Position numbers and translations under genes: made by a program. Positions 942 through 7,547 of a DNA stretch of 64,000 nt are shown piece by piece. The notes beneath the pieces are model-generated. The model did no database searches. It saw only the letters and a list, made by a program, of their open reading frames with translations, and was not told the origin of the DNA. Numbering within the stretch: the stretch's first letter is position 1; each line of letters begins with the position of its first letter. Source of the stretch: Octopus sinensis (lineage: Eukaryota); assembly GCF_006345805.1 (NCBI RefSeq), contig NC_043021.1, forward strand, positions 23,622,001 to 23,686,000. Direction: 5' to 3'.

Positions 942-1168
942 GGTAAGATCTGGATAAATAGTATCACAAAATGTTTTGTGAAAGAGGCAACAAAAATCTA
1001 CCAACGTCCGTCAATCGATTGTAAAGAAGCTAACAAAATTGTCCTGGACATACAACAAAAATGTTATACAGACAATGATTTCTGTAATGTTGGCTGGAAG
1101 CACCGCAATGATCTGTGGAGAATATTCAGTAAACCCATAACCACGGCCAAAACACAATACTATAAAAT
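942..1168 (+). CDS. STC: Stanniocalcin-like gene, paralog A, exon 3, GKIWINSITKCFVKEATKIYQRPSIDCKEANKIVLDIQQKCYTDNDFCNVGWKHRNDLWRIFSKPITTAKTQYYK (exons 1-2 presumably upstream of the window)
   Basis: Acceptor TTCACAG|GGT, donor AT|GTAAGT, same 227 nt length and same four Cys as paralog B exon 3. Confidence 0.9.
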
Positions 1169-1417
1169 GTAAGTATTTGTTATTTTTGTTATTGTTGTTG
1201 GCGGTGGTGATAGTAATAGAGGAGGTGGTCGTGGTGGTGGTGGTGGTCGTGGTGGTGGTCGTAGTGGTGGTATTCGTGATGATGGTTGCATTGATCGAGT
1301 GAGGGACATCTTGGTGTTGTGGAGGGACATGTAATTGTTGGCGGAGACTCAGTTCAATTTTGCTCGAACATTCAGATGGACGGGTGTCGTTCTGGATATC
1401 AGGATATAACATATGTG

Positions 1418-1825
1418 TGGCTGTGTAGGAAGAAGCTTGCTTCCAAATCACATCGTTCCGGGTTCAGTCCTACTGCATGGCACCTTGGGCAAGTGTCTTC
1501 TTCTACAACCTCGAGCCGACCAAATCCTTGAGTGGATTTGATCGGCAGAACCTGAACGAAGCCCGTCGTTTGTATGTGTGTGTATATGTGTGTGTATGTG
1601 CGAGTGTATGTGTATCTGTGTGTGTTTGTTTCCCGTATCTGTGTTTTCCCAACCACAACGCACGACTACCGGTGTTGGTGTGTATACGTCCGCATGAATT
1701 AGCGGTTCGGCAAAATAGATAGGCTTAAACAATGAGGACTGGTATCGATACTCTCGACTAAAATTCTTCAAGGCGGTGCCACAATATGGCCGCAGCTTAA
1801 ATGAATGAAACAAGTAAAATATTGA
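1418..1825 (+). mobile_element. Abundant tRNA-derived SINE with internal (GT)n; further copies at 9770-10125(+), 24570-24950(-), 33020-33440(-)
   Basis: GTGGCTGTGT..AAG head, GGTTCAGTCC B-box-like motif and CACCTTGGGCAAGTGTCTTC core, repeated four times in the window. Confidence 0.8.
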
Positions 1826-2613
1826 AGATGTCTGTGTCTGGCTGAATAACATGCATTTACTACCCATTCCATCGTGGTGTGACGAATCATTGAGGGATAT
1901 TCTTTGCTGTTACATGTAAAATTCCCTGCTAACCTCTCAAAGCACCACCTTTGAATATTACGATAACAACGGCATGATAAGTCTATATCTACCAAGCAAG
2001 CAAATAAACAATCAACCAAGATAAAACTATGTAACCACTTAAAGCATGATATTTGTAGTGGAGGAAGTATTTTTTCTCTGCAATATTTTCCCAGCTCCTT
2101 TTTCAGTCATAGTGCCTATAGCTAAAGGAATATTTTCTCCATATTTCTATGGATATTGAGCTTTATTAAAGTGTTTTTGTTTTGTTTTTTTTGCTGCTGC
2201 TTTGAACGACAATCCTGTCTTATTTAGGTCGACATTAATCTTGTTTTCCTTTTAGGTAGAGGCAGTCTACGGCATTGTTGATGTAGGCACTTTTTGTACT
2301 AGTCAATATCTTTCAGGCTTTCAGATCAAGGGTTCCGATCTTATAAAACATTCAACCAAGTGGCCGAAATGCTGGAATGCATACTATATTGGTATTGCAA
2401 ATACATTGTGGTTCATTAATTTAACGTATTCAGATTGTTCTGAGATTCATATTTTCTTGTCCGTCTGTTAAATGTTTTAGTTACGCGTTCCCTGTTATAC
2501 AACCATCGTTAGATATGTTTTCATATACCCCAAGGTACCTGTGACATTCTTCATCAGATAGAGCAGTGACATTATTTACGTTATTTACAATTGATGGATA
2601 TTTGTTTGTTGTT

Positions 2614-2659
2614 AACACAACGTTTCGACTGATATGCCCTCCAGCCTTCATCAGGTGTC
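2614..2659 (-). ncRNA. Minimal type I hammerhead ribozyme in a solo pLTR-like repeat
   Basis: GACAC-CUGAUGA-A-GGCUG(GAGGGCAUAU)CAGUC-GAAA-CG-UU-GUGUU: 5-bp stem I, 5-bp stem II, palindromic stem III, GUU triplet. Confidence 0.7.
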
Positions 2660-6210: not shown

Positions 6211-6329
6211 ACTTAAAACACGGAACCTATTGGGTGATAAAATTTGTTGTGAATGTTCACGTGAGAAGTTATAATTTTTAGTCGCCTTTCTAGGGGTAAC
6301 CCATTTCTGGGTGGGTGATAGACAGTGTC

Positions 6330-6890
6330 TTCTGTGGATTTTGTAGACATTTGAAAAACCTTTACTTTCGGGAAAGGAACAAATTTATTGTTTTCGAGGC
6401 AAAATCTTAAATGTGCTCGCATTTTTGACTGATCAAATAGAAACTTCCCTGGAGCGTTTCCAATGACCAGTTCAAATGCATACGCCAGGGTAAAAGGGCC
6501 ACAATCATATGCGCCAACTTGGGGATTAATTATATGAACTTGTTGAATTGTAGGAGTAATGTTTGTTTGTGGTGAATACAACGTTGATTTTGTGCCATTA
6601 GTTCCTGCGAAACTGGCAAATTCAAACTGTCATAAATATAAAAATCTCCTAAAAAATTGGTTGATAAAACAAAATGATTGTTCCTGGTGTGATGAATAAA
6701 CAGTGTGCGGTGTTGATTGTATGTTAGAAATTCCGTGTGATTATTATTCAGGTGCTCCACACAGAAATTGTAGGAGCTGCTTAGAGATATTGCTCGCTCT
6801 TCTGTTGGTGGCTAAAACCATGTCAATGTAGGGAATCGCTTTCGTATTCAGCGAGTATCTGAGGGTCGCAAGTGTCTCGCTTCTTAATCT
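6330..6890 (-). pseudogene. ULP1/C48-like cysteine-protease domain relic, probably transposon-derived (partial inverted copies at 29650-29790 and 31055-31222)
   Basis: NNHFVLS...YIYDSL...PQVGAYDCGPFTLAYAFEL..G..P..F.FDQSKMRAHLRFCLE..F.PFP gives a His-Asp-Gln-Cys arrangement; frameshifted near 6580. Confidence 0.65.
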
Positions 6891-7417
6891 GTACGCTCTG
6901 CCGGAGTTGGGCAACAACAAAAGGGCACGAGGCCACGTGTAATCCCCTGACAAGTGTCTCATCAAATCAGTCCTGAAATGTGGCTTCTTTCTTCTGATAA
7001 AAAAACGAGTCCACCAGTCAAATCTACTTGATTCTCTTAGTGTAAGATTTGTTGCAATATAGAAAGCAGGTTCCCTACAGTCGCTTTCGCCTTTTCTTGC
7101 TTCTGAAATTGGTATTTTCCCACCTCTTTGCAGAGTTGAATTTGCCTCCAGATTCAAACTGAGTTAGCATTAGACAATAAAAGAAAACTCTGTTACTCTG
7201 AGTGTGTGTGTGTGTGTGTGTGTGTGTGTGTGTGTGTGTGTGTGTGTGTCTGTGTGTGTGTGTGTGTGTGTGTGTGTGTGTGTGTGTGTGTGTGTGTGTG
7301 TGTTTGTGTCTGTCTATCTATCAGTTTGTCTGATGTCTGCCTATTTGAGTGTGTTTGTCTGAGTGTTATTGACTGAGTGTGTTTGATTAAGACACCAATA
7401 TATTTTTTATATTGCAG

Positions 7418-7547
7418 AATGTGGAAAAATTTTGCCAAGATATCGTCAAAATGCAGTACGCCATCTGCTCAGAAATTAATACCATGGATCAAAGCCCACT
7501 TCGACGCTAGCGATGATTTGGCAACCCTGTGGAAGAAATTACATTAA
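7418..7547 (+). CDS. STC: Stanniocalcin-like gene, paralog A, exon 4 (terminal), (I)MWKNFAKISSKCSTPSAQKLIPWIKAHFDASDDLATLWKKLH*
   Basis: Acceptor TATTTTTTATATTGCAG|A, phase-compatible with exon 3 (AT+A), conserved KC.TPSA..L.PWIKAH, TAA at 7545-7547. Confidence 0.85.

Follow-up and report, generated by a model that had tools for sequence, protein, structure and literature searches.

In concerted evolution, gene conversion can homogenise inverted or tandem paralogs and yet spare exons under selection. Conversion between arms is known from palindromes, for example on primate sex chromosomes, and conserved introns combined with diverged exons are known from snake venom PLA2 and cone-snail toxin genes. 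Invertebrate homologs of stanniocalcin (STC) carry a ten-cysteine pattern (Roch & Sherwood 2011, PMC5654410). Passages of a preprint describe octopus STC-like "doppelganger toxins" (superfamily SF5) that are highly expressed in the posterior salivary glands of Octopus bimaculoides and Hapalochlaena maculosa (bioRxiv 10.64898/2026.02.02.703354). We analysed a 64,000-nucleotide stretch of Octopus sinensis DNA (the window; its position 1 is CM016883.1:23,622,001) at which two STC-like genes, paralog A (LOC118767949) and paralog B, lie tail to tail in inverted arms. A and B are probably intact members of an older, locally expanded octopus STC-like array whose non-coding DNA was later homogenised by gene conversion.

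The locus resembles these known systems in its inverted arms, in sharp switches between near-identical and old sequence, in the incongruence of trees built from neighbouring segments and in a conserved leader with a variable mature peptide. It differs from classical palindromes in that arm identity is far below their >99.9% and in that the arms and spacer are full of transposable elements. Unlike in classical venom cases, the ratio of non-synonymous to synonymous divergence (dN/dS) is not significantly above 1. A and B are like the SF5 salivary-gland toxins in being octopus STC-like proteins with an STC2-like predicted fold, and the passages of the preprint give no description of the A/B locus, its gene structure or its evolution (bioRxiv 10.64898/2026.02.02.703354).

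An earlier note on this DNA had proposed a second STC-like paralog in convergent orientation, and this paralog is present and complete with four exons: A lies on the plus strand and B on the minus strand of a gap-free assembly stretch. Part of A lies outside the window and was read from L001, the LOC118767949 locus (CM016883.1:23,600,517-23,633,172), which adds 21.5 kb 5' of the window and whose positions 21485-32656 match window 1-11172 at 100%; negative coordinates are positions upstream of the window start. The earlier note had counted a lack of exons 1 and 2 in A as a refutation. Both are found 5' of the window by mapping of the RefSeq protein, exon 1 at -11483..-11378 (L001 10001-10106, plus strand, 11.5 kb away) and exon 2 at -3749..-3592 (L001 17735-17892, plus strand, 3.7 kb away).

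Exons 3 and 4 of A are open with intact AG/GT splice sites within the left arm, as that note had it. Exon 3 (942..1168, plus strand, 227 nucleotides [nt]) is entered in phase 0 and left in phase 2, has the acceptor ...ttcacAG/GG and the donor AAAAT/GTaagt, and encodes GKIWINSITKCF...TQYYK; its peptide equals residues 89-164 of RefSeq XP_036369331 (P0002, named an "uncharacterized protein") at 100% identity, and by itself it gives a Pfam Stanniocalcin match (E=3.9e-5). After intron 3 (1169..7417, plus strand), the last exon, exon 4 (7418..7547, plus strand), follows the acceptor ...attgcAG/A in frame with exon 3 and ends with TAA at 7545-7547. Exon 4 encodes the tenth conserved cysteine, C176, and the spliced product has 206 residues. 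The RefSeq model XP_036369331 (164 aa) lacks both exon 4 and the tenth cysteine, the exon 3 donor ATg-taa having been read as Met-stop (window 1166-1171; L001 22650-22656). The W-x-N...C...W tail of exon 4 recurs in P0003, P0005-8 and P0111-3, which include RefSeq models such as that of O. sinensis LOC118767950; the shared tail indicates that exon 4 is genuine and that the RefSeq model of A is truncated.

Exon mapping places the four exons of B at 54162-29286 on the minus strand. Exon 1 (54057..54162) carries the start codon and a hydrophobic leader (MLKLFSIILLQWALTSQG...), exon 2 (38248..38405) holds five of the ten cysteines, exon 3 (33656..33882) mirrors exon 3 of A, and exon 4 (29286..29397) ends with TAA at 29286-29288 and differs from exon 4 of A by an in-frame 18-nt indel. 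The spliced product has 200 residues.

The pair had been described as created by a ~10 kb inverted duplication. Such an origin predicts roughly uniform divergence, and this is not what we observed when divergence between A and B was profiled along the chain of local alignments between the arms: adjacent segments range from 1.3% to 23%, and non-coding windows are over-dispersed (index of dispersion 4.7). The 5' flank differs by 6% and the 5' part of intron 1 by 6.4%, and the last 1.1 kb of intron 1 (B 39513-38406) differs by 1.3%. Divergence is then 19.6% in exon 2, 15.3% and 11.6% at the two ends of intron 2, and 19.4% in exon 3, followed by 2.4% in the first 1 kb of intron 3 (A 1169-2178), 6.6% in its 3' part, 23% in exon 4 and 2-12% in the 3' flank. 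Exons 2-4 taken together are 20.3% diverged versus 5.7% for all non-coding sequence, a 3.6-fold difference (Fisher p=5e-26). The switches are abrupt, one about 50 bp into exon 2 and one exactly at the exon 3 donor, and the longest identical run covers 265 columns versus a permutation maximum of 211. A global MAFFT alignment of fixed 400-bp flanks was also tried; its distances were inflated at indels and microsatellites, and the local-alignment chain was used instead.

The O. bimaculoides locus L004 (CM046625.1:11,233,549-11,299,408) contains three A/B-type copies, Ob1-Ob3, on one strand as direct tandems; exon 4 of Ob1 probably lies inside an N run at 15048-15762 of L004. In the introns that flank the exon 2-exon 3 block, A and B are close to each other. 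The 330-bp slice before exon 2 and, among the 330-bp slices after exon 3, the first and the third differ by 0.9-1.5% between them, and the middle slice after exon 3 by 5.0%, whereas either is at least 7% (7-12%) from any O. bimaculoides copy in these slices. Inside the block the relation is reversed. B is 12.7% from Ob1 versus 19.6% from A in exon 2, and 8.2% versus 15.6% at the 5' end of intron 2. Neighbour-joining of the core block from exon 2 to exon 3 (907 columns) joined B with Ob1 in 497 of 500 bootstraps and A with B in 3 of 500, and neighbour-joining of the flanking intron tracts (330+330 bp, 569 columns) joined A with B in 500 of 500. A and B are therefore not each other's closest relatives in every segment. 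A protein tree with outgroups gave (A,(B,Ob1)) at 99%, and the motif GGPKKKNRPR is common to B and Ob1 where A has GHGVQKGQSR.

These trees show that the coding lineages of A and B predate the split between O. sinensis and O. bimaculoides. The earlier note had inferred a lineage-specific STC duplication or cluster; the cluster is real, with at least four STC-like genes inside a span of about 0.4 Mb on CM016883.1 in O. sinensis, but the recent duplication is at odds with coding lineages older than the species split. Adjacent segments have conflicting, well-supported trees and the flanking introns coalesced long afterwards, which is the mark of non-allelic conversion between the two genes once the species had separated. 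Judged by the same distances, the tracts exchanged after the split lie in intron 1 (its 3' part), in intron 3 (its 5' part) and in portions of the 3' flank; they are now 1-4% diverged, and the exon 2-intron 2-exon 3 block and exon 4 remain at 12-23%. Two further tracts stand at ~6%, namely the 5' flank and intron 1 in its 5' part, and their dating is indirect, as the interspecies distances cover other tracts. Given the mosaic divergence and the tree incongruence, we read the high identity of the arms as later homogenisation and not as the footprint of a recent duplication.

Under this interpretation, repeated arm-to-arm gene conversion would have given the pair the appearance of a recent inverted duplication. 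Conversion would have been recurrent, since tracts of ~1%, 2-4% and 6-7% suggest several events. Conversions that overwrote the mature-peptide exons would have been removed by selection, so that the two proteins were kept different with a shared leader peptide and disulfide scaffold. Since O. bimaculoides has direct tandems, the inverted placement would be an innovation of the O. sinensis lineage.

There are at least two other ways to obtain such a mosaic. The first is a recent, lineage-specific inverted duplication that gave rise to A from B, or to B from A, and in which the exons diverged fast by positive selection or exon-targeted hypermutation and the introns keep their true, young age. 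Exons more diverged than introns are the pattern of some venom gene families, most alignable non-coding DNA between A and B is 1-7% diverged and thus below the 7-12% interspecies intron distance, and O. bimaculoides lacks the inverted arrangement. But in exons 2-3 synonymous sites (dS 0.29) are no less diverged than non-synonymous sites (dN 0.21), which selection on the protein cannot explain, and the non-coding ends of intron 2 are as high as 12-15%. The pairing of the B core block with Ob1 (497/500) and their shared motif also speak against young exons, as does the distance of A to the outgroups, which is no greater than that of B. We consider a young duplication with such fast exon change very unlikely.

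The second is that a whole unit was duplicated recently in inverted orientation, and that conversion from a third, more divergent paralog, which is now lost or lies elsewhere, then overwrote exon 4 and the exon 2-exon 3 block in one of the copies. Conversion of this kind accounts for the identical mosaic and tree incongruence. It needs at least two separate imports that match exon boundaries, and in addition a donor that is not seen: the protein search returned no third O. sinensis protein of the A/B type, and L001, L002 and L003 contain no extra A/B-type exons. A donor is nevertheless conceivable, given at least three A/B-type copies in O. bimaculoides, and it could lie beyond the sequence covered here, which spans -21.5 kb to +64 kb. 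We regard import of the exons as unlikely, and prefer conversion of non-coding DNA between two old genes.

The coding sequences of both genes bear marks of constraint. A and B have both kept the reading frame with its start codon, each of the six internal splice sites, the leader and all ten cysteine codons; their first 18 codons differ at one site, and their sole coding indel is the in-frame 18-nt change in exon 4. When the same number of random substitutions was placed on the mature part in simulation, no stop arose in 0.4% of cases, all cysteines survived in 0.2%, and both held in 0.005% (P=5e-5). This neutral probability suggests that both copies have been held open by selection, with the residues between the cysteines changing almost as fast as silent sites. 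An open frame with fast-changing residues between cysteines is typical of secreted proteins in interactions between organisms. Between A and B, dS is 0.19-0.29 and dN is 0.21-0.22, and dN/dS is ~1.1 (bootstrap 0.69-1.94); in pairs with O. bimaculoides copies the ratio ranges from 0.54 to 1.17. A dN/dS above 1 was considered as proof of positive selection and was rejected as not significant: the bootstrap interval spans 1, and positive selection on the exons is thus not demonstrated.

A dN/dS of 1.1 overall would also fit one copy being a non-functional relic, unexpressed or recently inactivated, in which case the ratio would mirror relaxed constraint and not diversification. This is compatible with any of the origins weighed here, and its probability does not add to theirs. 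A protein database search returned no match to exons 3-4 of B beyond P0001 and P0002, which suggests that B lacks a protein annotation, and the protein search found no transcript-derived protein that matches A or B. The putative TATA boxes of the two genes differ as well, TATCTAAG in A versus TATATAAG in B. Set against these points are the start codon, splice sites, frame, leader and ten cysteines that both genes have kept, with the simulation result for the mature part, and we think it rather unlikely that either copy is a relic. The two TATA-like sequences lie 30 nt 5' of the ATG (window 54163-54192 for B; L001 9971-10000 for A). If they are TATA boxes, the 5' untranslated region would be a few bases long and the box of A would be weakened.

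Several observations weigh against intact old genes with converted non-coding DNA. The sparing of the exons could in part reflect chance placement of conversion tracts. Synonymous divergence (0.23-0.29) exceeds that of intron 2 (0.13-0.17), which is not fully explained; intron 2 may have been converted in part, or exons may mutate faster. A has no single clear ortholog in O. bimaculoides: its nearest copy is Ob3 or Ob2 in three of four core partitions and Ob1 in the 3' part of intron 2, by margins that are never wide. The inverted orientation comes from one assembly, and the O. bimaculoides copies are in direct tandem. Finally, the missing database protein for B counts here too.

An excess of exon dS is not confined to A versus B. 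Across A, B and Ob1-Ob3, dS in exons 2-3 (0.15-0.32) is above the divergence of adjoining introns (0.07-0.12), also between species and among the O. bimaculoides copies. This excess could reflect either general conversion of introns within the family or faster mutation of exons.

The inverted repeat itself is real. A blastn comparison of the window with its own reverse complement gave a collinear chain in which left 100-11935 matches right 34556-19559 at 77-98% identity, far above chance. The left arm had been thought to start near position 319, but homology extends beyond the window on that side, where -4855..-3343 pairs with right 39513-38006 and -12301..-11622 with right 55223-54481. The left arm thus occupies 1..11935 of the window (plus strand) and extends 5' to at least -12301. 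The right arm (19559..55223, minus strand) comprises the whole B unit with its 3' flank at 19559-29285 and its 5' flank at 54163-55223. Instead of units of ~10 kb, each arm holds a complete four-exon gene plus flanks, over about 24 kb on the left (at least 24 kb) and about 36 kb on the right, and sequence shared past the stop of A runs for 4.4 kb, to 11935, where ~2.7 kb had been estimated. Only ~8 kb can be aligned between the arms; the remainder consists of arm-specific transposable elements.

An assembly artefact would produce the same arrangement if haplotypes had been mis-joined, or if the right part had been wrongly oriented within the repeat-filled spacer. The spacer (11936..19558, 7.6 kb) consists of transposable elements and is the likeliest site of a mis-join, and the O. 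bimaculoides units are in direct orientation. The earlier note had doubted that the repeat is an assembly echo. We agree, and mis-joined haplotypes are disfavoured as well: the A and B proteins differ at about one third of residues, and an exon difference of 20% together with many kb of insertions between the arms is far past allelic variation. Neither the window nor L001 contains a gap (N count = 0 in both). In addition, the spacer holds a G+C-rich long interspersed nuclear element (LINE) of ~5.1 kb (13997-19141) that is bracketed by the 18-mer TATCYGTGCATGAATACC at 13979-13996 and 19142-19159. This 18-mer has exactly two occurrences in the window, with 0 expected by chance, and its placement marks it as the target-site duplication of the LINE. 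The assembly would thus be contiguous across the spacer, since the LINE sits between its own target-site duplication copies. We judge an artefact to be highly improbable.

Both proteins belong to the STC family by profile, cysteine pattern and predicted fold. With Pfam PF03298 (cut-off 23) the scores are 38.5 bits for A and 38.7 bits for B, over profile positions 33-146 and 33-159 of 200, respectively, and phmmer matched B to human STC2 (8a7d, PAPP-A complex; E=1.5e-5), with nine of the cysteines in register. Among 1.8 billion representative proteins, 108 relatives were found. In a 28-sequence alignment nine cysteines do not vary (C41, C50, C55, C62, C75, C99, C115, C129 and C136), and the tenth, C176, is conserved in at least 90% of the sequences. 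The AlphaFold model of B, for which A was represented in the input alignment by its RefSeq model, has a predicted local distance difference test (pLDDT) score of 86.2. In a Foldseek search with this model the top four PDB matches are all STC2 chains (probability 0.99-1.0, template modelling [TM] score 0.43-0.58, with E only 0.03-0.07), and the next PDB matches have probabilities <0.1. The hydrophobic N-terminus is kept between the genes (MWKLFSIILLQWALTSQG in A, MLKLFSIILLQWALTSQG in B), was modelled as a lower-confidence helix and is a putative secretion signal peptide. A and B are thus predicted to be secreted STC-fold proteins of ~200 residues with ten cysteines.

Like vertebrate STC1 and STC2, A and B have a hydrophobic leader, the ten-cysteine pattern and a PF03298 score above the cut-off, and the B model matches the helical fold of human STC2 in the PAPP-A complexes 8a7d, 8a7e, 7y5q and 8hgh. 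They differ from STC2 in being shorter (200-206 residues) and only ~14-17% identical in the fold alignment, and from the STC family in lacking the eleventh (dimerising) cysteine. Unlike a single conserved hormone gene, they are part of an octopus clade with many copies that evolves fast (pairwise dN/dS 0.5-1.2).

Family membership raises the question of a role in venom: A and B are possibly "stanniocalcin mimics" of the salivary (venom) gland. One could then picture the tail-to-tail pair as a "diversity-preserving palindrome", in which frequent arm-to-arm conversion keeps promoters, leader and introns alike for co-regulation and selection spares the mature exons of two functionally distinct toxins, for example ones directed at different prey STC/pappalysin systems. 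We hold this picture to be tentative and rather doubtful. If true, it would be the first genomic mechanism described for the diversification of SF5 cephalopod toxins, and with the venom link the locus would be a compact case of conversion and selection shaping a toxin repertoire. As a type, the locus is an interesting but ordinary case of gene-family evolution, namely local expansion with concerted non-coding evolution. It also carries a caution, in that high identity of inverted arms may mislead as a recent duplication; here only the non-coding DNA is young.

The comparison also corrects the annotation of this little-studied octopus gene family, as the RefSeq model of A lacks its last exon, no database protein matching B was found, and models in O. 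bimaculoides and O. vulgaris fuse neighbours. The current RefSeq model XP_052832787 (333 aa; L004 10001-55860) combines exons from adjacent tandem copies, joining Ob1 to Ob2 and Ob3, and the O. vulgaris model CAI9741011 (308 aa) similarly merges two adjacent STC-like genes. Four more STC-like loci of O. bimaculoides lie on the chromosome record of L004, and a fifth appears only in the older annotation. In O. sinensis, LOC118767950 (23.82-23.88 Mb) and LOC118767942 (24.01-24.03 Mb) lie on the minus strand of CM016883.1 with an exon layout like that of A and B. A weak STC-like tblastn match 5' of A (L001 5537-5674) has 33% identity and three stops and was judged to be due to chance.

Arm-specific insertions were found as the earlier note had described them, with a Penelope-like element on the left and a fold-back and a 21-mer array on the right. 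On the left, block 2179-6588 consists of low-complexity runs and a degenerate Penelope-like element, whose reverse transcriptase lies at 4864-5717 on the minus strand (Pfam RVT_1; tblastn E=1e-23 versus other such elements of the window). The right-only fold-back in the 3' flank of B (26904-27689 and 27910-28695) has 786-nt arms that are 99% complementary and 220 nt apart; arms this alike suggest that it inserted recently. Also confined to the right are the 21-mer array (32245-32522, 13.2 copies), a LINE fragment with a reverse transcriptase open reading frame (ORF; 35544-37199) and Penelope-like elements at about 40-48 kb.

A left-only block of 222 bp (6891-7112) lies just 5' of A exon 4 and is probably the "210-bp hammerhead element" of the earlier note. 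Its restriction to the left arm holds, but a hammerhead ribozyme was rejected: Rfam gave no hammerhead at gathering score in the whole window and none at E<=1 in 1-12000, and a regular-expression scan for the hammerhead core (CUGANGA...GAAA) with a paired helix II found none. The minus strand of the block has UUGAUGAG, one base off the hammerhead core. The block has O. bimaculoides counterparts 5' of exon 4 (L004 14799-15045 and 55321-55713), and for this reason it may have been lost from B rather than gained by A. Sub-threshold Rfam matches to mir-297, mir-466 and mir-1277 (7800-8530 and 11590-11740) fall on TA/CA microsatellites and were set aside as composition artefacts.

Besides the LINE, the spacer contains a Penelope-like 3' fragment whose ORF (11996-13633) has a GIY-YIG-type tail. 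In the LINE, ORF1 has a zinc knuckle and ORF2, with endonuclease and reverse transcriptase, is broken into two ORFs (15508-17487 and 17339-18904). A direct repeat of 2.4 kb, with 95% identity between its copies, occurs at L001 1-2372 (19-21 kb 5' of the window) and at window 22501-24847 in the 3' flank of B. It carries GIY-YIG-like ORFs (23863-24325), and it is therefore probably a Penelope-like element and not part of the gene duplication. LINE copies related to that of the spacer occupy 55.5-58.8 kb and 61.7-63.9 kb, both on the minus strand.

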